Positions 51,206 to 63,600 of a DNA stretch of 64,000 nucleotides are shown here, in pieces. A program made the position numbers and the translations under genes. Numbering within the stretch: position 1 is the first letter of the stretch; each line of letters opens with the position of its first letter. The notes below the pieces were generated by a model. It saw nothing but the letters and a program-made list of their open reading frames with translations, was not told the DNA's origin and made no database searches. The DNA comes from Phallusia mammillata (taxonomy: Eukaryota). The DNA lies in the NCBI GenBank assembly GCA_965637545.1, contig OZ281500.1:5518001-5582000 (forward strand), written 5' to 3'.

Positions 51206-54200
51206 ATGTTTGAGTTGCTTGGTTACCCTGCATCAATTGTCGAGCTTGCTAACTTACGAGGCTGGCTTCAGTTTGGTGTAATGAAGTTTCTTGGCGTTCC
51301 GTATGCCGAGCCACCAGTGGGACCTCTCAGATTTGAGAAACCTGTTCCTCATCCAGGGTGGCCAGGAATTCGAAATGCTACAAGTACAGGATCACAATGT
51401 CCTCAATTTTCTCCTGGTAAATTTGTTTGTTTAAAGAAAAAAGTATACCTTGTAATCCATTAAATGCCTCTCGGAAAATGTGTGTAAAAGTGGTAACAGC
51501 TGATTTTCGTCGGAACAAGGCAAAACAAATGGTGTTAAAGTTTAAAAGGAGCAAAAATGTGAGAGGCCCTGATAAGATTTTGCACACAGCCTTTCTCGTA
51601 AACCCTGGTACAGCCAACGAAGATTGCCTCCTTCTTGATATTTATGTTCCTGAACGACTTACTGATGACCCAACTACTTTTCCAGTCCTTGTCTACTTTC
51701 ATGGTGGAGCCTTGGTCTTTGGTTCAAGTGGGTTTTGACATTTTAGATTATATTGCAATCTTCCTTTGTGTTAATTCGCTTTTCCCTTCCAGAGGAATCC
51801 AGCGAGGGAAGCGTACTTGCCAAACAAGGAAGGATGATTGTCGTTGAAGCCAACTACAGATTAGGGCTGCTGGGTTTTATGGCGTCGGGTGATCAACGTT
51901 TAACAGGTGTGTTGCGTTAAATTGTATTCGCAAAGTCAACATCGTGAATAAAAAAGTACATATTTTAATTTAGGCAATCTCGGTCTTTACGATCAGAAGA
52001 TGGCAATCCAATGGGTAAAAGACAACATTGAAAAATATGGAGGAGATTCAAACTCTATCACTATTTCTGGTTTTGCTGCAGGAGGTCTTACAGTCATTGC
52101 CCAAGTAACTACTATAACCTTTTCCCATTCAGAGCAGAAATTAGAGCCTTTGTTTGCAGTTGCTGAGTCCACAAAACAATGCCAGTCTTTTTCAACGAGG
52201 AATTGCTTTGAGTCCTTCACCCAGACTAACTGAACCGATGGCTCGAAATTTGAATGACTTAAGACAAACAGAGCGGACAACATTTAATACCATACTTTGT
52301 AAGTAGTTGTGGATTGTGCACAGGTTTTTTGTGGGACTTTTCTTTTGCAACCAAAAGTTTGATCACATGGAACAGAGCATTACTGTTTTTTCCTTATTTG
52401 TTGCTAAAGGCCTGACAATTTTATTAGAAATGTAGACGTTACTGAAGGTTTAAAAATGAAACATATATATTTTAGCGTCATCCGGATGTGACAATTCTAC
52501 CGACATGATCACGTGTCTAAAAGCTCTTCCAACTGCAACTTTTGTGCAATTTTTGGCTGCTACCTCGCTGGCCAATCTTTTTAACACTTGACATCAGTTT
52601 TGGTGATGAATTTCTTCCAGGACTGCCTAAAGACGTTGAATCGTTAGCAGCCTCAAAGGACCAGTAAGAAAATTTTATGTTGATGAATAAAAAAAAAGGT
52701 TAAAACTAATCATGATGAAAAACTAAAGTACTGCTAAAGACCCAGCACGATTTTGACTTTAACAGGCACATAAAATTGTCTGTTCTATTTCGGATTTGGG
52801 TATAATAGGGTTATCGAATTGTTCTTTAGGTACAAGCTTATTTTGGGTCAAACGCAACAAGAAGGTGCTGCAAGTGTTGCTTTTACGACAACAGATCAAG
52901 ATCTTGTTGAGATAATGAATTTAGTCCTGGATTTCGCTGGTGAAAATAACACATCGCCACAAGCAAAGACAGTGCTGGAACATATTTACACGTGCGTACG
53001 GTTTTGTGGTTGTGCATTTCCAAACTAGCAATATGTTGTTTTCTTCGTATTTGCTGGAAAACTGTAGCCTACAACCACTTAAAAAATAATTTTGTATTTT
53101 AGAAACTTTATCGAAACCGATTCGGAGATAAAGCGACAGAGAGAACTGGCTCATTTCTTCAACGACTGGATTTACTTCGTTCCTGGAGCACAATTTGCAT
53201 CATTGGCAACTCGACAGAATGTTCCGACGTAAGTAAGCGAACAAAACTCAAAGTGACAAAATTTTGATACGTTTAAAAAGCTTGTTGTTAATTGTTATAG
53301 TATAAATAAACCTTAAATATGTAAGAGTAACATTTTGGTACGAATTTTTTACAAATAGGTTTTGGTGTTAAAGTTTTGGACATCTGCATTGCGCTGTTTA
53401 TGATTGCGATGTAAAGACTTCTTTCAAAGTTCTGTATTGTAAATTAAACTATTTTAACTTTACTCGACAAAATAACAACTTTAAATTTACTGAAAAGTAA
53501 GTCACACAACCTTATCTTTCAGATACTTCTTTCGTTTCACGGGACCGATTGGAAACAGCACATTTTCTCGAAATTCCCAATTCTTACGACCTGACACAAT
53601 GCACATTGACATGGCCGTATACCTGTTTGGACTTCCGCTTATACTAAACTTCTCTGCAAGCGATGCCACCAGAAGCCAAAATTTTATTGATTTGATGGCA
53701 AACTTTGTTCACAACGGGTAGAGCAACTAATTAGGCTTGTAGTTCGATTTAGTACACATCCGCACGTGTTACTGTTTTTCTTTCTTTAGTGCAAATATAG
53801 TTTTTGTTGAGTACAGATATATTTAACAGATAGATATTTGGTGTAAAATAATAAAAACAACACCAGTTGAGGTCTAAATTAACTGTTCCAAACTTTTGAA
53901 CAAAGTTCCTAATAATTTTTGCGAAAATCTAAAACAAATGATTTCAACTAAAATTTGATTTTTTTGTGATAGAGACCCTAACGTTGGAACCATCTTTGAT
54001 GAGAAATGGTCTGTCTATGACCCAATTCAGAAAAATACTTTCCAAATCTCCGAAGAACTTAACACGGAGTTTGGTGTGTATGCGAGAGCAGAGGATTTGT
54101 GGGCAAATGTGTTTGATGATCTTAATACTGACACATGCTCATCAACAACAATTGCACCTTGTCCGATGGCTACAACAAGTAGAAGTGCCTCTTTCATGGC

Positions 54201-54252
54201 CAGTTGGTTGATCGTCATTTTTTGGTTGATTGCGTGCCAGTTTCTGGCCTAA
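51206..54252 (+). CDS. Type-B carboxylesterase/cholinesterase-like protein with nucleophile Ser->Ala and GPI-signal-like tail; +1 frameshift as sequenced (pseudogene or assembly error)
   Basis: Exons ?-51416, 51590-51727, 51793-51906, 51974-52104, 52160-52298, 52476-52663 (one base too long), 52830-52991, 53103-53228, 53523-53717, 53973-54252. Motifs [72 protein letters not shown]-x-D...YLFG, NFV..GDPN. The 5' end is unresolved; candidate signal-peptide exons are 50433-50467 and 50523-50593. Confidence 0.82.
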
Positions 54253-54744
54253 AAGAAAATCATCGAGCTGTTTTGCTGATGCGTCCATGTTTATCTTTTA
54301 TTTGCTAGTAAATGGTTTGCACACAAGGAAAGCCGACAACAAGTTTCTCATCTTGCATTTTCTTAACGACGTTGTATAAATATTGTATAATAGTATACTT
54401 TTCGGAACGCTGCGTTATCGAACTTGTATGTGGCTATCACGTGTTAATTTAATGTAAGCGGCCCCCTGTGAAAAACGTTTTGTGATCTAAACATACTTTA
54501 CTTACGAAAGTAGTAGGCTGTCTATAATCAGGCCAACTCCATAATTTATGTGCATTTATTTTTTCGGCGACTGAATACATCTGATGCGTGAACGGGCGTA
54601 ACTAGCAAAAATATGCAAATGAGATGCAACAGCTAACAATAGATGCATGCAGATGAAAACGGATGTGAAAGAGGGATAACTACACATATGTGTCTTGGTG
54701 GACACATGTTGTATGGAATGCGAGTATATGAGCTTTTATGTAAA

Positions 54745-56016
54745 TTAGGGACCCGAGGGAGAGGGACAGCTATCAGTTTCCGCCCTTCCTGAAGCGTGGT
54801 GGGTCATGCTAGTGTATTTAACCACATTCATCTCAGAAATAGTGCAGCAAATCTTGCCTGATGTTCCAGGGAGATGAACCTGAAAAAACATGATTTTCTA
54901 TCACAAATGTTCACAATAACGCCAAACAGTTATCTTCTGTAAGAAACGCAAATAAAAATACCAATTTGTATTCCTGTCTTTGAGATAAATACTAGTTTCT
55001 TGATCCAAATACACTGACAACGACGTTGTACTCACCACCACAGTCTTGCCCATTATTGAGTGTGGGTCTGTAAGGGAGAGGCCGTCAATTTGGCGATTTT
55101 CTACAAAAATGTTGCAATGAGAGTTGGACGTGATTTCTCCAAGGTTGCCCTCTACGCTGTAAAACAACTCCGTAGTGAACAAAAGTAACTCATCGAAATA
55201 TTTATTATGTAGGCTTATAGTTTTGTGTAAACGCATTTCCGATACTGTGGACATAAATTGCTCTGCTATTTAATACAATGCAGCATTTTAAAAGCTTGCT
55301 AGTGTTTAGTGATTGCGTTCTCTAAATTGGGGTTCTATTGTCGAGATAAAAAATAAAATGTCAATGTGAAAAGTCGACTAACCCAGGTCCGGGAATATTA
55401 ACTTTTTTTCCAACTCCGCCACAATTTTCATTTGGTTTCTTTTTGTGGATGTGAACGTTGCTTGCCCGGTTAGCCTTTACCCCAGTTACGAAAATTTGGG
55501 CAGATAAATGGTTGTTCTGTGCACAAAACAAAATCCATTTAGGTGTAATCATCGAACACACAGGCATAGTAGTTTAACATAATACAAAACAACGTATCGA
55601 TATGAAATTCGAAATCAAAGACACAGGTATGTGCTATGTATTTAGGCGCACACACTATATGCATAAAAACAGTGATACCTCCTCTTTGAAACAAACATGA
55701 CCACTAGGACCAGATTCGTGACCATCAGCAGATCTTCCTAGCCCGCAGTGAGCGTACTTGACGCCACTAACCTGACCTGCAAAGCAAAACAAGCTTGAAA
55801 ACAAGCAATGGTTTGGCTTAGACAGTAAACCTTAAATAGTAAAATCAGATTTATATAAGTCTATCAAAACGAAGAAACATCAATTATAGGCTACACAACA
55901 ATTCTGATTTACGTATTATTATAAACATAAAATATTTGTAAGCCTAAAACAGAAAATGCTAACTTACCGACAGTAAATGCAGTTAAAAGCACGAAGATAA
56001 ATGCAACAGTCTTCAT
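54745..56016 (-). CDS. Secreted Cu/Zn-superoxide-dismutase-fold protein lacking Zn ligands and electrostatic loop, 178 aa
   Basis: Exons (-) 56016-55968, 55776-55679, 55516-55383, 55156-55036, 54879-54745, all GT-AG with phases 1/0/2/0 (537 nt). Protein: MKTVAFIFVLLTAFTVG QVSGVKYAHCGLGRSADGHESGPSGHVCFKEENNHLSAQIFVTGVKANRASNVHIHKKKPNENCGGVGKKVNIPGPGVEGNLGEITSNSHCNIFVENRQIDGLSLTDPHSIMGKTVVVHLPGTSGKICCTISEMN...GP*. SOD motifs H-x-H, C-x-x-x-G, G-x-LG, SL...SI-x-GK-x-VVVH and C-x-TI are present in order. Confidence 0.85.
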
Positions 56017-57039
56017 TTTTCTAGTTTCAAACTTAACTTTTTGAAACGAATCAACTTAACTGAGCTCCTATCTCGCGAAAAAAAGTTTTTAAATACGTAT
56101 ATCCAAGTAAAATCTATGTTAATAGGTCGTCTTTGTTGACACAGGTAGGAGCTTTTTGCGGTTAATCTTCACAGTTCCCTACTTGTATTAATTAATCTAT
56201 TTGCAAAACAAATGCTCTAAGCTGTATCACTTTGCAGAAAAACAAACAATACAAATGCCGACAAACTTTAACATTTTAACTTAAACTGGTCTGGCAGGCC
56301 GGCTTGTTGCTAGTCGCAACTTGCAAATACCTTGTTGTTTCAGGTTGCGTGCAAGGATCGGTGTATATGTTGAGCACGGTAGGGCAATCAAACTCTCAAT
56401 AATGTAGTGCATAACCTTAAACAGGAAGCTGATCAACTTCCGACAAGACCAAAGGTTGGTTACCACGGCAACAACGAGTTATTACGGTTCCTAAATTGTT
56501 GATTGGCACCTTTTTGACATTTTCGTGCAACATGCAAAGCATTTTTTGCAACATGCATTTCAGAGCTTGCATTTTTTTCGATCATTGCAACAGATTTTGC
56601 ATACCTAGCTTGAGATACCTCTAGCAATCCAAAAACGATTGTGTGTAAATCTGGGAACGTAACTATTAGTGTTTGCGACATTATAAAACATTGTTAAGAG
56701 CGAAGATCCGAAGATAAAAATGCGCGGAATTCAATATCACCATAGAGATCACCAATTTACACTGTGGTGTGTTACTTTAAATTGCGCCAAAAGTCGCACG
56801 CAAACAGTTCTCATAATAGCCAACGAAATAAATCGGGGCTCACCCTTTCGCTAATAGGTTCTCACCAAACAACGAACTTAGTACACATTTCCAGGTCTTT
56901 GTTGCATATATTTCAGCTATCTTCGCTCTCCGTAGTGGCATATATCCATAAAATATGCTGTTTTAAAAAAGGGGAAGCACCTTGAAAATCTATTGTGATC
57001 ACTTTTTATTCTAAATAGGGAAATCTACCTGGTTAGAAG

Positions 57040-57610: not shown

Positions 57611-60600
57611 ATGCAAAAAGATTTAGACACAGACGTTCTTATCACCAACGAGATAAATGATGATGTAAGAGATAAGTATTTGTTATGACATAAATTAACT
57701 GTTTTTGCAATGAACACCAAGTTATCAAAAAAGGTCTGACATGATTTTATCAGTAAAATGTTTCCATCCAAATTACCTATCCAGTTATGTTAATCAATAA
57801 CAACAAAAGATTTCCTATTAAAAATACAAATAATAAGGTTGACTAAAACTTTTTTGTGTTAGGATAATACTTCTGAAAGCAACACACCAGTTTACAGACT
57901 GTATTGGTATCGATGGTACGTTATTCTGCTGTTTTCCTTTTTTGCTGCTGTCCAGACTGGAATTGCTAACACATGGGGTCCTATAAGTGTATCTGCAAAA
58001 GCTGCTCTGAACTTTACTGACTGTAAGAAACTATCTGTTTGTGAACACTTACTTACTATTGTAACACATTCCTTTCGTAGATTTGTCATGTGTTTAAGGT
58101 TTTTTTATATATATTTTCAGGTGATATTGAACTCTTTACAAGCTTACCAGCTGGTGTGTTATTGATTTGCACTCCATTCTTTATTTTCTATTTGGACAAG
58201 TGGGGATTGAGACTTCAATTTATTGCCGCCTCTCTATCTGTTTGTGTGGGGGCAGGTTTAAGATGCATTCCAGCTGATTACCTCACAACCAAAATGTATG
58301 TATAATACTAAATGACTGTGATCTGTACCACAATGTAGTGTCTTTACATCTTGCTGTGCTAACCCAAAATTTTACACAGTAGTATATTTTATAAACATGT
58401 TTTTGTACAAATATATGTTATACAATGTACTGGAAATATCATTTCCTTAGAATCGCCCAAATTGCCCAGTGCTTTGCGGGAATGGCATCATGTTTTGTAT
58501 TGTCAGTTCCCCCAATGCTTTCTAATGTTTGGTTCCCTCCAGGCCAAAGAATATCAGCTACGTCCTTTATGGTTTTATTTGGAAATGTTGGTATGCCTTT
58601 ATGTAACTATGTTGATAAACATAAAATTGGATCTTTTGACAAATAGATTACATAACTTAAAAGATGCTCCTTCTAATTTGCCTGTAGGTGCCGTTTTTAG
58701 CTTCTTTGTGGAGCCAAAAATGGTCACTGCCCCCACCAACTCTAGTCCTCACAACATATCACATCCATTACAAAATTCAAACATGACTGGAAACATTACT
58801 AATATTCCTGAAATGAGGTAATTGTATTTGAAATATGATTTACTTTTAAACAACAACTAAGTTTGATTGCAGTTTGAAAAGCTTTCAAAATACTTTTTGT
58901 TAACTTATTTTTTGTTTTAGAAAAGAGATCCACAATCTTTTGTACATGTATTGTGGAATGGCAGTTGCAATTTTTTTGTGTGTCCTAGCTTTTTTCCCCA
59001 ATAAACCTCCATTGCCACCAAGCCCTTCTGCTAAAGCTAGTCGCTTAGGTTTGAAGGTAAATTTTCAAAAAAGTCAGTGTTCAATTTCTAAAGGAGTGTT
59101 GATCACATTTGGCTTGTTTTGTGCATTTTAGGACTCCATCAAACATTTAGCAAAAGTGCGAGCATTCTGGGCAGTCAGTTTAACGCAAGCCTGTGTTATT
59201 GCTGCATATTATTCCTGGAGTGGGGTGTTTGCAGACCTGTACAGCTATTTCAATGTGCCACAAGTACTGTTTGCATGCTTTTATGTTTGGCACATATAGG
59301 CACCATGAATTTCTGTTATACATCTTTTTCTAGGCAGTATCAGGCAATATTGCAGCTATGATGAATGTTGCCGGGGTAACCATTGGGTTTTTGGTGGGTT
59401 GGTAAGTGCGACTTTGATATTAACCTACATGCAGTTTTGTTATTAAAAATTCTTTAGATTTATCCCAGTTTACAACTTTAAAATATTGTTTTACTTTTCA
59501 TTAGGTGTTCTGACCATATGAAAAAACGTTTAAAGGTCATAATTTCCCTTTTGCTTATTTTAATACTATTGGCATATGCCTATCTGGTAATCGCAACCAT
59601 GAAATGGATTGATTGGCCACCGTTCCATTTTACTACTGGTAAGTGAGCAGCATTTTATAAACATGCTTTTTGACTTGTGGTTACATAGTTGGTAAAGGTA
59701 ATGTTTGGAACAGTTGGGGATGGAAGTCCTGCCACAGTCTTGCACCATAAATGACCAATTGTCTTCACTTACAGTTTTTTTTTAGAACTATACATGTCTT
59801 TTTAGTGACACTTTGGGTTTGCTGTATTATAATCGGAATTGGAGTAAACTCTGTGCTACCACTAATCACTGAGATTTCTGTTGATCTTGCATACCCAGTC
59901 AGTGAAGGAACCACTAATGCAATTTTGATGTGGTTTGCAATGGTTGCACAAATTACCTTTGTGACTGTCTTATCCAGCCTTAATGGTGAGTCAGAATTGA
60001 AACAATTAGATGCTAAACACTTGTAAGAGTTTAAACAAATTTTGCTTGGTACCACATAATATAGGCCAGTGCTCTTCAACCTTTTTAGTGGCACGGAACC
60101 CTTGAAGTATTTTGTCAAATTTTGCGGATAATAAGCATGTAATACAATAGGCTCAATCATAGGCGCCGACATTTAATTTTTTCCGGGTATGCCGTATTAT
60201 ATGACGTCATATAATGCCAAATATATTTTCTGCGGATGCATATGGTAAGAATAAATTAAAGTTGCAGTATATAAGCTTTACACAACGTACTTCCACCGCC
60301 AGGCCCTTTTGCTACTGTTTCAATTTAACGACCCATTTGCCTAAATTACGGGGAGGCAAAACAATAAAGATAGAAAAGATTTAGTTCGACTGTCACCTAA
60401 CATACTTTGCCCTGCGTCGCAAATTACTTTAATGTTTAACATTTATCTTCTCTGTAATAACTATAACAAAAATGCTTGTTTTCACGCAACAAAGCGCACA
60501 CACTTCTGGCCTAGCAATAACAACAATCCTTTTTGTTCGTTTTAACGTCGCTTGTTTCGTTTACAACGTGTCGCATATTTAACGCAGTGAGTTGTATGTG

Positions 60601-63600
60601 ACGCATTATTAATTTTAAAGTTTAGTGTACTTTGTTTCAACGATGTTCTGACCTGCCTGAAACTTTCGACAACGTTAATTTTTGTAGGCTAAGTACCAAC
60701 CTTACGTTTGTGACGTAACATTAGGTGTTATTTGTTGTTGTTTTTTCGGTTGAAACTAACCAGTCGTTGTCCTTGTGGTGTAGGCCAGTAGTTCTCAAAC
60801 TGTGCGTGGCGACGCCCTGGTGCGGCTCTTTGTTGTTGTATCAATAAACACAACTTTAATAATAAGTTTCCTCATTAACTTTTATTTGCTGGTGCGTCGC
60901 ATGTCCAGAAAAACTTGTCCAGGGGCGTCGCAACAAAAAAAGTTTGAGAACCACTGGTGTAGGCAGTTACAACAAAGGTTGGGCTGTATTTTTATAATTT
61001 AGTTCACAAACGGTAAACTTTTTTATCACGTGGTTGTTGACAAAATACCTGGGGCAGCGGCGTTTCTACCATAGGACAGCGCCAATACCTTTGTTGTGCT
61101 ATTTACCACTTTTTAATGTCTAAATTCCAATGCTTCTTAATGTTTAAATTCCAACTGTAATGAACGCAAACAATTTAATGGTTGTGAAACAATAACCTCG
61201 ATTAAAATCTTTTGCGTATGTTACGTATTAGTCGAAATAATTTTTCAAAGCAATAACGCATGACTAAAGTTGGTCCGATTCTCGGGTATGCGGCATACCC
61301 GAGTTTTTCGTCCGGGTATGCCACGCATACCCGGCATACCGGTGTTCGGCGCCTATGGGCTCAATATAAATAGAAAATGTGTGCATTTTTAACCAGTGAC
61401 GTGGCCAAAGGGGTCGGAGTATACACATGTTAGTTATTAAATTGGCAAAAAAGGAAATATTTTTTAGATTTTTAGGAAATAATTATTAAAAAGACACTTG
61501 GTTTTTTATTAGATCTCTGAGCATAGCGATTTTTTACGCCTAGGGATTTTTTTTTTACGCCTAGGGAATTTTTTTTATTTTTTATTTTTTTTTTTACTTT
61601 TTACGCCTAGGGATGGGCTGAGCTGAGCCAGAACCCGAGACTCGGTTCCGAGCATCGCTGTTTTTGATGCTCCGTTGTTGCACAAACTGACCCGAACATT
61701 AAATTTGTATATTCATGCCCTCCTAACGTAGCTAGTGTTCAAAAGGGTGTCTATAAACAAAAACGAATGATTTTTCAAATGTACGTAAAAGACCTTGTAG
61801 AGCTGAAACTAACGTAGAATGGAGATTTTTGTGACGTCATAACGCACCGAGCATTAACGTGAGATACCATATGGTGCTCGACCAAATAGAGCATTTGCAG
61901 TTTTGGCACATCCCTAACATAGGGTTGCCATTCGTCAGGATTTTCCCTGACATGTCAGGGAATTTAGTGTTTAAATCTGCGTCAGGGAGAAATGTTAAAA
62001 TGTACCTAAAAGTCCGGAATTCAAGAAAAAATATTTGTATATTTTATGAAATTAATGTACCAACGGAGAAAGTTTCTAGTAGATAGCTACAACCGCGTCT
62101 ATACCATGAAACGTAATGAGGTAAACTGGCGGCGCGCAGGTTAGTTATACAGTTTACAATACCTGTTTGTTACTAGATGTTTAACAGTTAAATACACAAA
62201 TAAAAATCCGCATCTCAAGAAAACACAGCATTCGATGCTACATGAGAACGTGGGAAATTTCATTTCCTCAACTGTGTACCTATTATGCAGGGAACTAACT
62301 AACAACTAAAAGTCGAATGCGTGAGACATAACAACATTTTTACAGTGGCATTTTTCTTCAAATTTAAAAAGGTCCTTGTGACTCCCATCGTTTAATTTTT
62401 TTGGTTCAAAAAAAACTTAACTAAACAGAAGCCTGCGCAGAAAGTTAATTATCGTATGTAACGTTTTGAGTATCGCATGTAACGTTTTCTCGTGTCGCCG
62501 TCCGTGTGACTTCCCAATATTCTAATTTATTCCGGAATAGAAGTGTTTGGATCGCAAAAATGGTCAACGCAGCGGTTCTAGGACTGGGGTCCGCGGTCTT
62601 TAAGGGCATTTTGCGGGGACCTCGAGAAGGTGGAAGTAATTCTATATCCTTATTTGGCGTCAGTTTGTGCAACTGGATAAGTTGAAATCAAAGTGAAAGT
62701 GAGAATCGACCGTCTCCATTGTTAAACAATAGGCTTTATTGCATGACAACTAACAAAAATGCAATTGTTCGCGCACAATTGTAACGTTTTTTTGTTCTGT
62801 CTGTGATGTCAGATTTGGATCATTGTTATGCGCAATTTTGCATGTCTAGCTAAAATCCTGCAATCAACTTTCGTTTTTCTGAAATACACATTCAGACTTA
62901 CGTCAACACATTTGGACTTAAAGTTTGAGAAAAACTGGGTTCACGCAACCGAGATAAATTTTGTCAGGGATTGTGTTTCATAAAATATGGCAACCCTACC
63001 CTAACACCCAGTGTTACTCAGGAAACAGGAACAGCAGATGATCTTGGATCTATTATTCAACAAATTGTCAAAAGTCACAAAATATTTGGCACCCCCAAAA
63101 TGTTCTGTTGCCTACGACACTGTTTTTAGTAAACACACCCCAAGCACATAATATAAGTTGACTTCAATAAAAAGATTCACTGAAATGATTTGCCATGCTA
63201 CTTGGATTGGTCGTTTCTGTATTTGTCTTAAACTTCGGCCACAGAGCAGCAAAACTTGGTTTATTACGTCACAATTGATCAATGGGTTAACTAGATTTGG
63301 TAAACTAGATTGTACCGACGAGCGTTGCTGTTCGCCACAATGATATTATGAATCATTTTTGAAATGGTACAAGAAAGCTCAGGGAACCCCTGCGGAACCC
63401 TAAAAGTTCACGGAACCCCTGAGAGAGTTGTACGGAACTCTAGGGTTCCGCGGAACCCCGTTTGAAGAGCCCTGATATAGTCTAACCCACATATTAAACA
63501 AAACAAGTGTAAAATTTGTTTTTTACTCTTATATAATTTATTGAGTAAAAGGTCTTCTAAACAGAATTTTGTTGTTTTAGATCAAATCATTGCAAATTAC

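Follow-up and report, generated by a model that had tools for sequence, protein, structure and literature searches.

A 64,000-nucleotide stretch of the genome of the tunicate Phallusia mammillata (contig OZ281500.1, positions 5,518,001 to 5,582,000; hereafter the window) raises the question of what a superoxide dismutase (SOD) homologue is when much of its active site is missing. At 54745-56016 of the window, a preliminary description made from the sequence alone had proposed a five-exon gene for a secreted protein of the SOD fold, with a three-histidine copper site and neither zinc site, bridging histidine nor electrostatic loop, and had suggested that it might bind or carry Cu(I) outside the cell, or be a new redox enzyme, rather than act as a dismutase. 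We report that this gene is real and expressed. Its product is a remote Cu/Zn-SOD homologue belonging to a very small and divergent tunicate family, and the three-histidine state is best described as a derived loss in the Phallusia lineage.

Joined by script, the minus-strand coding segments 56016-55968, 55776-55679, 55516-55383, 55156-55036 and 54879-54745 give a 537-nucleotide open reading frame (ORF) coding for 178 residues and a stop, and all four introns are of the GT..AG type, in phases 1, 0, 2 and 0. Public sequencing runs were placed on 53800-56800: three of RNA type, from three studies (X1, X2 and X11; the RNA kind is the tool's guess), and one DNA run (X10). All four exon joints were found at exactly the predicted borders in contigs of the three RNA-type runs, with ends reading CT..AC on the plus strand, and a single X11 contig of 1020 nt crosses all five exons. 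The DNA run covers the locus unspliced, with zero joints. Since the GT-AG joints are present in the RNA-type runs and absent from the DNA run, the former must contain mRNA. No base differences or indels between run contigs and window were reported at the locus. The proposed five-exon structure was thus confirmed to the base.

The transcript could be delimited at both ends. A TATA-like box, TATTTAAAAA (56086-56095, minus strand), recognised from the sequence and the contig ends, precedes the 5' ends of the RNA contigs (56070/56066) by 25 to 29 nt, and a poly(A) signal, AATAAA (54297-54302, minus strand), lies 21 to 34 nt before their 3' ends (54263-54276). Exon 1 (55968-56070, like all others on the minus strand) consists of a 5' untranslated region (UTR; 56070-56017) and of the coding segment 56016-55968, and ends at a GTAAGT donor in phase 1; it codes for residues 1-16 and the first base of Gly17, that is, most of the signal peptide. 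Exon 2 (55679-55776) codes for residues 17-49, exon 3 (55383-55516) for residues 50-94, exon 4 (55036-55156) for residues 95-134, and exon 5 (54263-54879) for residues 135-178 and the stop (54879-54745), followed by a 3'UTR that runs to about 54263-54276. We conclude that the gene is real, spliced, expressed, TATA-driven and polyadenylated. It was previously unannotated, and its product was found in the public protein collections neither by word searches of 5.8 billion proteins nor by an exhaustive HMMER search of 1.84 billion representatives; it is hence an annotation gain.

Low-level retention of intron 3 (55157-55382, 226 nt, phase 2) was the sole isoform signal, at depth 11 to 18 compared to 270 to 370 for the spliced form (4 to 7%). 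It is seen in unspliced exon 4-intron 3-exon 3 contigs of X1 and X2 at 55128-55412, and translation of the retained intron would stop 15 codons after Gly94, giving a truncated protein. A Zn-loop exon hidden in this intron, which would have restored the missing loop with its ligands, could be ruled out: stops occur throughout all three intron frames, and the contigs contain no alternative exon. An assembly or sequencing slip was also considered for Lys86-Lys87, the codons of which form a slippage-prone run of seven A (55403-55409), and was ruled out, as DNA and RNA contigs agree on the length of the run.

To which family does this protein belong? Profile queries were alignments with the mature Phallusia core (residues 22-156, 135 residues) as first row, named A2 and A6; the exon-5 row of A2 was misaligned at its N-terminus, which brought slight noise into the PDB profile search and the exhaustive HMMER search. 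Among 24,736 Pfam families the best was Sod_Cu (PF00080), with 23.9 bits and an E value of 6.2e-5. The match spans core residues 20-115 and positions 2-108 of the 133 in the profile, and its score is lower than the gathering score, 28.9. The Pfam match anticipated in the preliminary description was therefore obtained, and with the expected family, but under the threshold for membership. In the PDB profile search (E <= 10), 15 of the 16 matches were Cu/Zn SODs (best E 0.004), and the alignment paired HIH with HVH, Cys81 with Cys57, and VVVH with VIH. A hidden Markov model (HMM) built from 62 viral SODs, themselves collected by a DNA motif scan, gave the Phallusia protein 15.0 bits, compared to a best of 9.3 among some 1,900 shuffles; the alignment shows an identical ligand map, with nine residues deleted from the Zn loop.

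Searches with shorter pieces or other libraries gave less. For exon 4 alone, the three nearest named neighbours in language-model features were Sod_Cu clusters (0.86-0.89), which is a lead only. A word search with this exon gave no match, and in PDB phmmer matched it at E <= 10 to human SOD1 alone (residues 83-119, E 0.21 for this short piece), colinearly with the earlier alignment. Exon 3 found no SOD in PDB by phmmer, and the ORF pieces had no match in Pfam, all of these being too short to decide. NCBIfam gave no match. A match to the CHRD domain (E 0.019) was read as noise or as a distant fold echo. Directly compared with E. coli SodC by phmmer, the Phallusia protein reached p = 0.05, a value that says little either way. 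A scan of genome contigs with SodC as query returned nothing but near-identical genes of enterobacteria, of which two were used.

The exhaustive HMMER search returned only two relatives. One (P0001) is a 170-residue protein of Clavelina lepadiformis (CAK8683635.1 / XP_076811175.1; E 7.5e-10), labelled in UniProt as having a SOD copper/zinc binding domain; the other (P0002) is a 172-residue protein from a marine metatranscriptome catalogue (E 9e-4). No more were found by a word search with the family alignment, by a viral contig scan or by a scan of Joint Genome Institute metagenome contigs. Both relatives pass the Sod_Cu gathering score, with 36.7 and 32.5 bits. Because they do so and are linked to the Phallusia protein at E 7.5e-10 and 9e-4, its membership of Sod_Cu stands, as we read these scores, by transitive homology, and we conclude from the matches as a whole that it is a remote Cu/Zn-SOD homologue.

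The predicted fold is compatible with this assignment. AlphaFold2 was run on A6, an alignment of 67 rows (the Phallusia core, the two relatives, the 62 viral SODs and two enterobacterial SodCs), and gave a model with a mean predicted local distance difference test score (pLDDT) of 89.9 and a predicted template-modelling score (pTM) of 0.84; with essentially one sequence, pLDDT was 31. The model is an eight-stranded Greek-key beta-barrel, to which DSSP assigns eight main strands and a ninth, short one. In Foldseek, its top 50 matches in PDB were all Cu/Zn SODs. It aligned with human SOD1 in VIA-align at Z 18.3, the root-mean-square deviation being 1.9 A over 122 residues, and the best matches of this kind were chains of SOD1 in apo or loop-disordered form, in which the two long loops are missing. 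The SOD fold given in the preliminary description is thus what the model predicts. An alignment-free model of the Clavelina relative in the ESM Atlas (pTM 0.73) also matched Sod_Cu clusters, at TM 0.72-0.77.

We then compared the product with SOD1, residue by residue. At its N-terminus, a short basic stretch is followed by a hydrophobic core of 14 residues and by the small-residue motif Val-Ser-Gly before Val22, features which, judged by eye, are those of the signal peptide previously assigned; cleavage is predicted by eye after Gly21, in exon 2. The mature protein would have 157 residues, about 16.5 kDa and an isoelectric point (pI) of 8.2, and contains 11 His, 11 Lys and seven Cys (27, 45, 81, 108, 145, 146 and 172). 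Neither a glycosylphosphatidylinositol (GPI) signal nor an N-x-S/T sequon was found, and the C-terminus is not hydrophobic.

The three retained copper ligands are His71 (His46 of SOD1) and His73 (His48), coded in exon 3 at 55453-55445, and His136 (His120), coded in exon 5 at 54876-54874. The disulfide columns, which are 97 to 98% Cys in 64 SODs, are filled by Cys81 (55423-55421; Cys57 of SOD1) and Cys146 (Cys146 of SOD1), so that the bond is predicted. The column of the bridging His63 holds Lys87, of the pair Lys86-Lys87 at 55408-55403; RNA and DNA agree on this codon, and the four-His copper site of an active Cu/Zn SOD is accordingly incomplete. The zinc site is lost as well: of its ligands in SOD1, His63 corresponds to Lys87, His71 is deleted, His80 corresponds to Val95 and Asp83 to Asn98 (55146-55144). 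Exon 3 carries the beginning of the shortened Zn loop, and exon 4 codes for Val95, Glu96, Gly97, Asn98 and Cys108. Between the equivalents of Asn65 and Gly82 this loop has 7 residues, compared to 16 in SOD1. Loop VII is reduced to the 6 residues between His136 and Lys143 (54855-54853), compared to 22, and the equivalents of His120 and Cys146 are 8 or 9 residues apart instead of 25, which leaves no electrostatic loop with Arg143. Cys145-Cys146 are coded at 54849-54844, and Cys172 lies in a tail bearing His and Cys.

This map was obtained from three independent profile alignments, and reproduces the one drawn by eye in the preliminary description, codon positions, loop lengths and the count of seven Cys included. 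Its statement that Arg143 is missing is literally correct and needs a complement: the Arg143 column is occupied by Lys143, three residues before the disulfide Cys, and this Lys is present in all three family members. A compensating histidine elsewhere was looked for and rejected, as the alignment places His43, His52, His107 and His125 at SOD1 positions 17, 28, about 91 and 110. These positions we take to be away from the copper site, on the basis of the alignment and not of coordinates.

The two relatives show which of these features are those of a family. A quick maximum-likelihood tree, to which the 62 viral SODs and E. coli SodC were added, placed the three proteins in one group (SH-aLRT 100) on a very long stem. 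They have in common a signal peptide (by eye), the equivalents of His46, His48 and His120, both disulfide Cys, and the equivalents of Gly82, Leu84 and Gly85. In all three the Zn loop is about nine residues shorter and lacks His71 and His80, and only 4 to 7 residues separate the His120 equivalent from a conserved Lys-Ile-Cys-Cys. In the 67-row alignment, the Lys of this motif stands in the column which is 98% Arg (Arg143) among canonical SODs, and the second Cys in the Cys146 column. Conserved residues specific to the family are Cys27, His43 and Cys45, all coded in exon 2 together with the end of the signal peptide and strands beta1-beta2, and the extra Cys145. The Phallusia and Clavelina proteins have both Cys108 and Cys172, and P0002 has neither. 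Such joint gain and loss suggests that the two form a pair, in which case one Cys would be left unpaired in every family member.

Two further observations concern the ends of P0002. A Met that opens a typical signal peptide comes directly after its first 16 residues, so that residues 1-16 are probably translated 5'UTR. Its tail ends rich in His, and the Phallusia protein has His-His at 161-162.

The Phallusia protein is thus no single oddity as regards its loops, as two equally loop-less relatives exist, and the three histidines are conserved in both. It is nevertheless the only one of the three without the bridging His. Where Phallusia has GKKVN and GVEGNLG, the Clavelina protein and P0002 have GPHYN, with the bridging His63, and EDEGDLG, with Asp83 and an Asp at the His80 position; they possess all four copper histidines, together with an acidic pair (Asp and Asp, flanked by Glu) at the His80/Asp83 positions. 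Both fit the published description of Cu-only SODs (PMC13017621), on a single small domain, save that the His80 position holds Asp and not Glu, and they are probably extracellular Cu-only dismutases. We conclude that the three proteins represent a very small, very divergent and undescribed tunicate clade of single-domain, loop-less SOD homologues, as far as their sequences tell. Our literature search found no published link between Cu-only SODs and tunicates.

The Phallusia branch has evolved faster than the others, its tip length being 1.43 compared to 0.78 and 0.87 in the relatives (about 1.7 times as long). The two relatives are identical to each other in 53 columns, of which Phallusia keeps 28 (53%). 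Among its 25 changes, 6 fall within residues 86-98, in loop IV, where Pro/His/Tyr became Lys/Lys/Val and Glu/Asp/Asp became Gly/Val/Asn. The result is a net change of about +5 charges in the loop on the fourth-ligand side of the copper site, and the mature pI is 8.2, compared to 5.1 and 5.75 in the relatives. Because both relatives keep the fourth His and Asp83, the three-His site does not represent the design of the family; it is a derived, concerted and lineage-specific loss on an accelerated branch. The His triad of the preliminary description is therefore present, but as a property of Phallusia and not of the family, in which four His are seen.

One might ask whether such a branch is simply that of a functionless duplicate, decaying on its way to a pseudogene. 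The branch is indeed the longest in the family, and catalytic residues have been lost. The ORF is intact, however, with four canonical introns and neither frameshift nor stop; spliced mRNA is found in three studies; and the fold-determining glycines and all family-specific Cys are retained. We regard decay as very improbable.

The reading that we favour, by a modest degree of confidence, is that the Phallusia protein is a degenerate SOD scaffold reused as an extracellular binding protein, and that it has ceased to be an efficient dismutase. The half of the site formed by loop IV was rebuilt, GPHYN becoming GKKVN and the acidic E/D/D becoming G/V/N; with these changes the bridging His and its acidic second shell were lost, and a formerly acidic protein became basic. 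That copper binding was weakened, and efficient dismutation abolished, is argued from the loss of the bridging His and of Asp83, from the insertion of two Lys, from a simulation of the H63R substitution, and from the existence of inactive homologues. In that molecular-dynamics work, a cationic residue at the bridging His (H63R) is predicted to release copper, which is not the case for H63A (PMC8446448). Secreted SOD homologues without an intact copper site and without activity are known (PMC13017621, PMC9118643). Residual metal binding at His71, His73 and His136 would then be at most weak. For a role as binding protein, dominin/cavortin and the Cu-less CSRP repeats may serve as models, by analogy.

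Several points weigh against this reading. The three copper His, Lys143 and Glu96, beside the former Zn site, are all retained in Phallusia. An intact gene with spliced mRNA in three studies shows constraint and leaves its target unspecified. By itself the protein stays under the Pfam gathering score, and the fold result depends on the homology claim, as canonical SODs dominate the AlphaFold alignment; it amounts to compatibility and not to proof. Finally, the Clavelina gene may be an ortholog or a paralog of the Phallusia gene, there being no microsynteny.

The first of these points leads to the proposal made initially, that of a working three-His copper site comparable to the Cu(I) state of SOD1, in an extracellular Cu(I) binder or carrier or in a new redox enzyme. 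The three His columns are invariant over all 67 rows of A6, and the model places the three residues in strands of high confidence; without loop VII the site would be open, and Lys143 is conserved at the Arg143 column. The triad, however, looks like what remains after a loss, since the relatives carry four His. Asp83 and the acidic residues that orient the copper ligands in Cu-only SODs (PMC13017621) are gone from Phallusia, and two Lys replace the fourth ligand, at a position where the H63R simulation predicts Cu release (PMC8446448). Moreover, at 53% site retention the chance of keeping three His out of three is about 0.15, so that their retention is by itself no sign of selection for metal binding. 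We therefore consider a working three-His site unlikely, while still deserving attention.

A different possibility is that the Phallusia protein is still an active Cu-only dismutase, in which Lys87 and Lys143 would supply the charge and the proton relay otherwise due to the bridging His, Arg143 and the electrostatic loop. Fungal Cu-only SODs work near the diffusion limit without Zn or loop VII (PMC13017621); the fold, the disulfide Cys and three ligands are kept in Phallusia, and a basic surface would attract superoxide. On the other hand, the literature consulted on this point yielded no natural active Cu/Zn or Cu-only SOD without the bridging His, inactivity is predicted for an oyster extracellular SOD in which one of the four Cu ligands is missing (PMC9118643), and a second shell of the E110/D113 type is absent from Phallusia. 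An active dismutase seems improbable to us, and a reused, degenerate scaffold remains the reading that we prefer.

Where does the clade come from? The positions of the introns in human SOD1 could be derived by arithmetic from variant names in Human Genome Variation Society (HGVS) nomenclature (c.72+19, c.169+50, c.239+34, c.240-7 and c.358-10; PMC11138100, PMC11537459), which place them after coding bases 72, 169, 239 and 357. Human intron 3 (phase 2, within the codon that precedes His80) corresponds exactly to Phallusia intron 3 (phase 2, in Gly94, before Val95, the His80 equivalent). Human intron 4 (phase 0, Val118/Val119) likewise corresponds exactly to Phallusia intron 4 (phase 0, Val134/Val135, next to His136, the His120 equivalent). 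Phallusia intron 2, which is in phase 0 and falls in the turn between beta2 and beta3, is a probable match of human intron 1 (phase 0, Lys23/Glu24), within a two-residue indel. The Clavelina gene (L002:10001-11027) has four exons, and its three introns coincide with Phallusia introns 1, 3 and 4 in column and phase, intron 2 being absent. It is flanked by a Yip1 gene and a large WD40 gene, unlike the Phallusia gene. Searched by sequence against PDB, the Clavelina protein matched SOD1 and SOD3 best (E about 1e-6), and SOD5 was not among the best 60. Shared intron positions and these best matches suggest that the clade descends vertically from an intron-bearing, SOD1-type Cu/Zn SOD gene. Loss of the loops may have been common with CSRP and SOD5, or convergent; both fit the intron data.

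A bolder version of this history can be imagined. The family would be an undescribed tunicate lineage of minimal Cu-only SODs, the first outside fungi and oomycetes, which lost Zn site and loop independently of SOD5 and CSRP; the Phallusia copy would have been neofunctionalised, its Lys pair, in place of the bridging His and acidic shell and beside the His triad, forming a new cationic site for another metal or for an anionic ligand (Cu(I), vanadium species, microbial or tunic polyanions), so that the enzyme would not simply be dead. Phallusia is a vanadium-accumulating genus. As a whole, we judge this scenario to be improbable.

The surroundings of the locus were also inspected. The SOD-like gene stands by itself on the minus strand, flanked by two genes on the plus strand, and tblastn found no second SOD-like copy in the 64-kb window. 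On one side, exons of a carboxylesterase gene at 51206-52233 (plus strand) are convergent with it; three ORF pieces match Pfam COesterase, at E 3.9e-17, 1.4e-11 and 2.4e-10. The three RNA-type runs gave no contigs on 53800-54200. On the other side, hydrophobic multi-pass ORF pieces occupy 58090-60026 (plus strand), one with a weak MFS_1 match below threshold (E 7.5e-4); they are probably exons of a transporter gene, of which an intron would hold the hAT stack at 60067-63474. A 220-nt contig of X2 at 56250-56469 (depth 5.7), about 180 nt upstream of the 5' end of the SOD-like gene, lies on no predicted exon and may be a transcript or genomic carry-over.

In a recent review of the field, single-domain Cu-only SODs with an open site are found in fungi and oomycetes only, and animals have only multi-repeat CSRPs (Peterson and Culotta 2026, PMC13017621). 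The Clavelina protein and P0002 look like single-domain animal Cu-only SODs, against that statement. These two have the shortest active-site loops among those compared, and together with the Phallusia protein would define a minimal SOD scaffold of about 135-155 residues. The three offer a test case for whether Zn site and electrostatic loop were lost once or more than once, and a natural pair, four His compared to three His and a Lys, in which the role of the bridging histidine in an open Cu-only site may be addressed. Invertebrates were already known to have secreted SOD homologues that are degenerate; what is new here is the tunicate family, with Phallusia as its degenerate member. The functional part being drawn from sequence, we consider this a moderate finding and not a major one.

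How do the tunicate proteins compare with known systems? The Phallusia protein shares with the Cu-only SOD/CSRP type (PMC13017621) an extracellular, disulfide-bearing SOD barrel with no Zn site and a truncated loop VII, as predicted, and departs from it by its copper site, in which Lys87 interrupts the set of four His. Within this type, Candida albicans SOD5 is alike in being a secreted single barrel with the disulfide Cys, no Zn site, a truncated loop VII and an open site, and the Clavelina protein and P0002 resemble it further by keeping the four copper His and Asp83. The tunicate proteins differ by their size (about 135-155 mature residues, compared to about 25 kDa), by having no GPI signal, and by a loop VII which is shorter still. 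The relatives have Asp and not Glu at the His80 position, and Phallusia lacks the bridging His and has Val95 and Asn98 in place of the E110/D113-type acidic pair, a signature which was compared through the SOD1 positions His80 and Asp83, SOD5 itself not being a row of the alignment.

CSRPs, compared here by description and not as rows of the alignments, are likewise animal extracellular proteins whose SOD-like domains have no Zn site and no long loop VII, and one is listed for the tunicate Styela clava. They consist, however, of 4 to 12 tandem repeats on chains of at least 100 kDa, whereas the Phallusia gene codes for one domain in a 178-residue product, which sets it apart from that class.

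Oyster dominin/cavortin (Cg-EcSOD) and the bivalve homologues deficient in the copper site, also compared by description, share with the Phallusia protein a secreted single domain and an incomplete copper site; they are reported to lack SOD activity and to take part in immunity and in metal handling (PMC13017621, PMC9118643). According to these papers they are homologues of extracellular Cu/Zn SOD, and they belong to another phylum, so that the bivalve and Phallusia degenerations are presumably independent.

Human SOD1, finally, has the same fold as the model, the three His, the two disulfide Cys, Gly82, Leu84 and Gly85, and the positions of introns 3 and 4, and human SOD3 is, like the Phallusia protein, secreted. 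Identity to the two is about 22 to 24%, and they differ from the Phallusia protein in having the Zn ligands, the bridging His, the electrostatic loop and Arg at position 143 instead of Lys, while Cys27, His43, Cys45 and Cys145 are extra in Phallusia.

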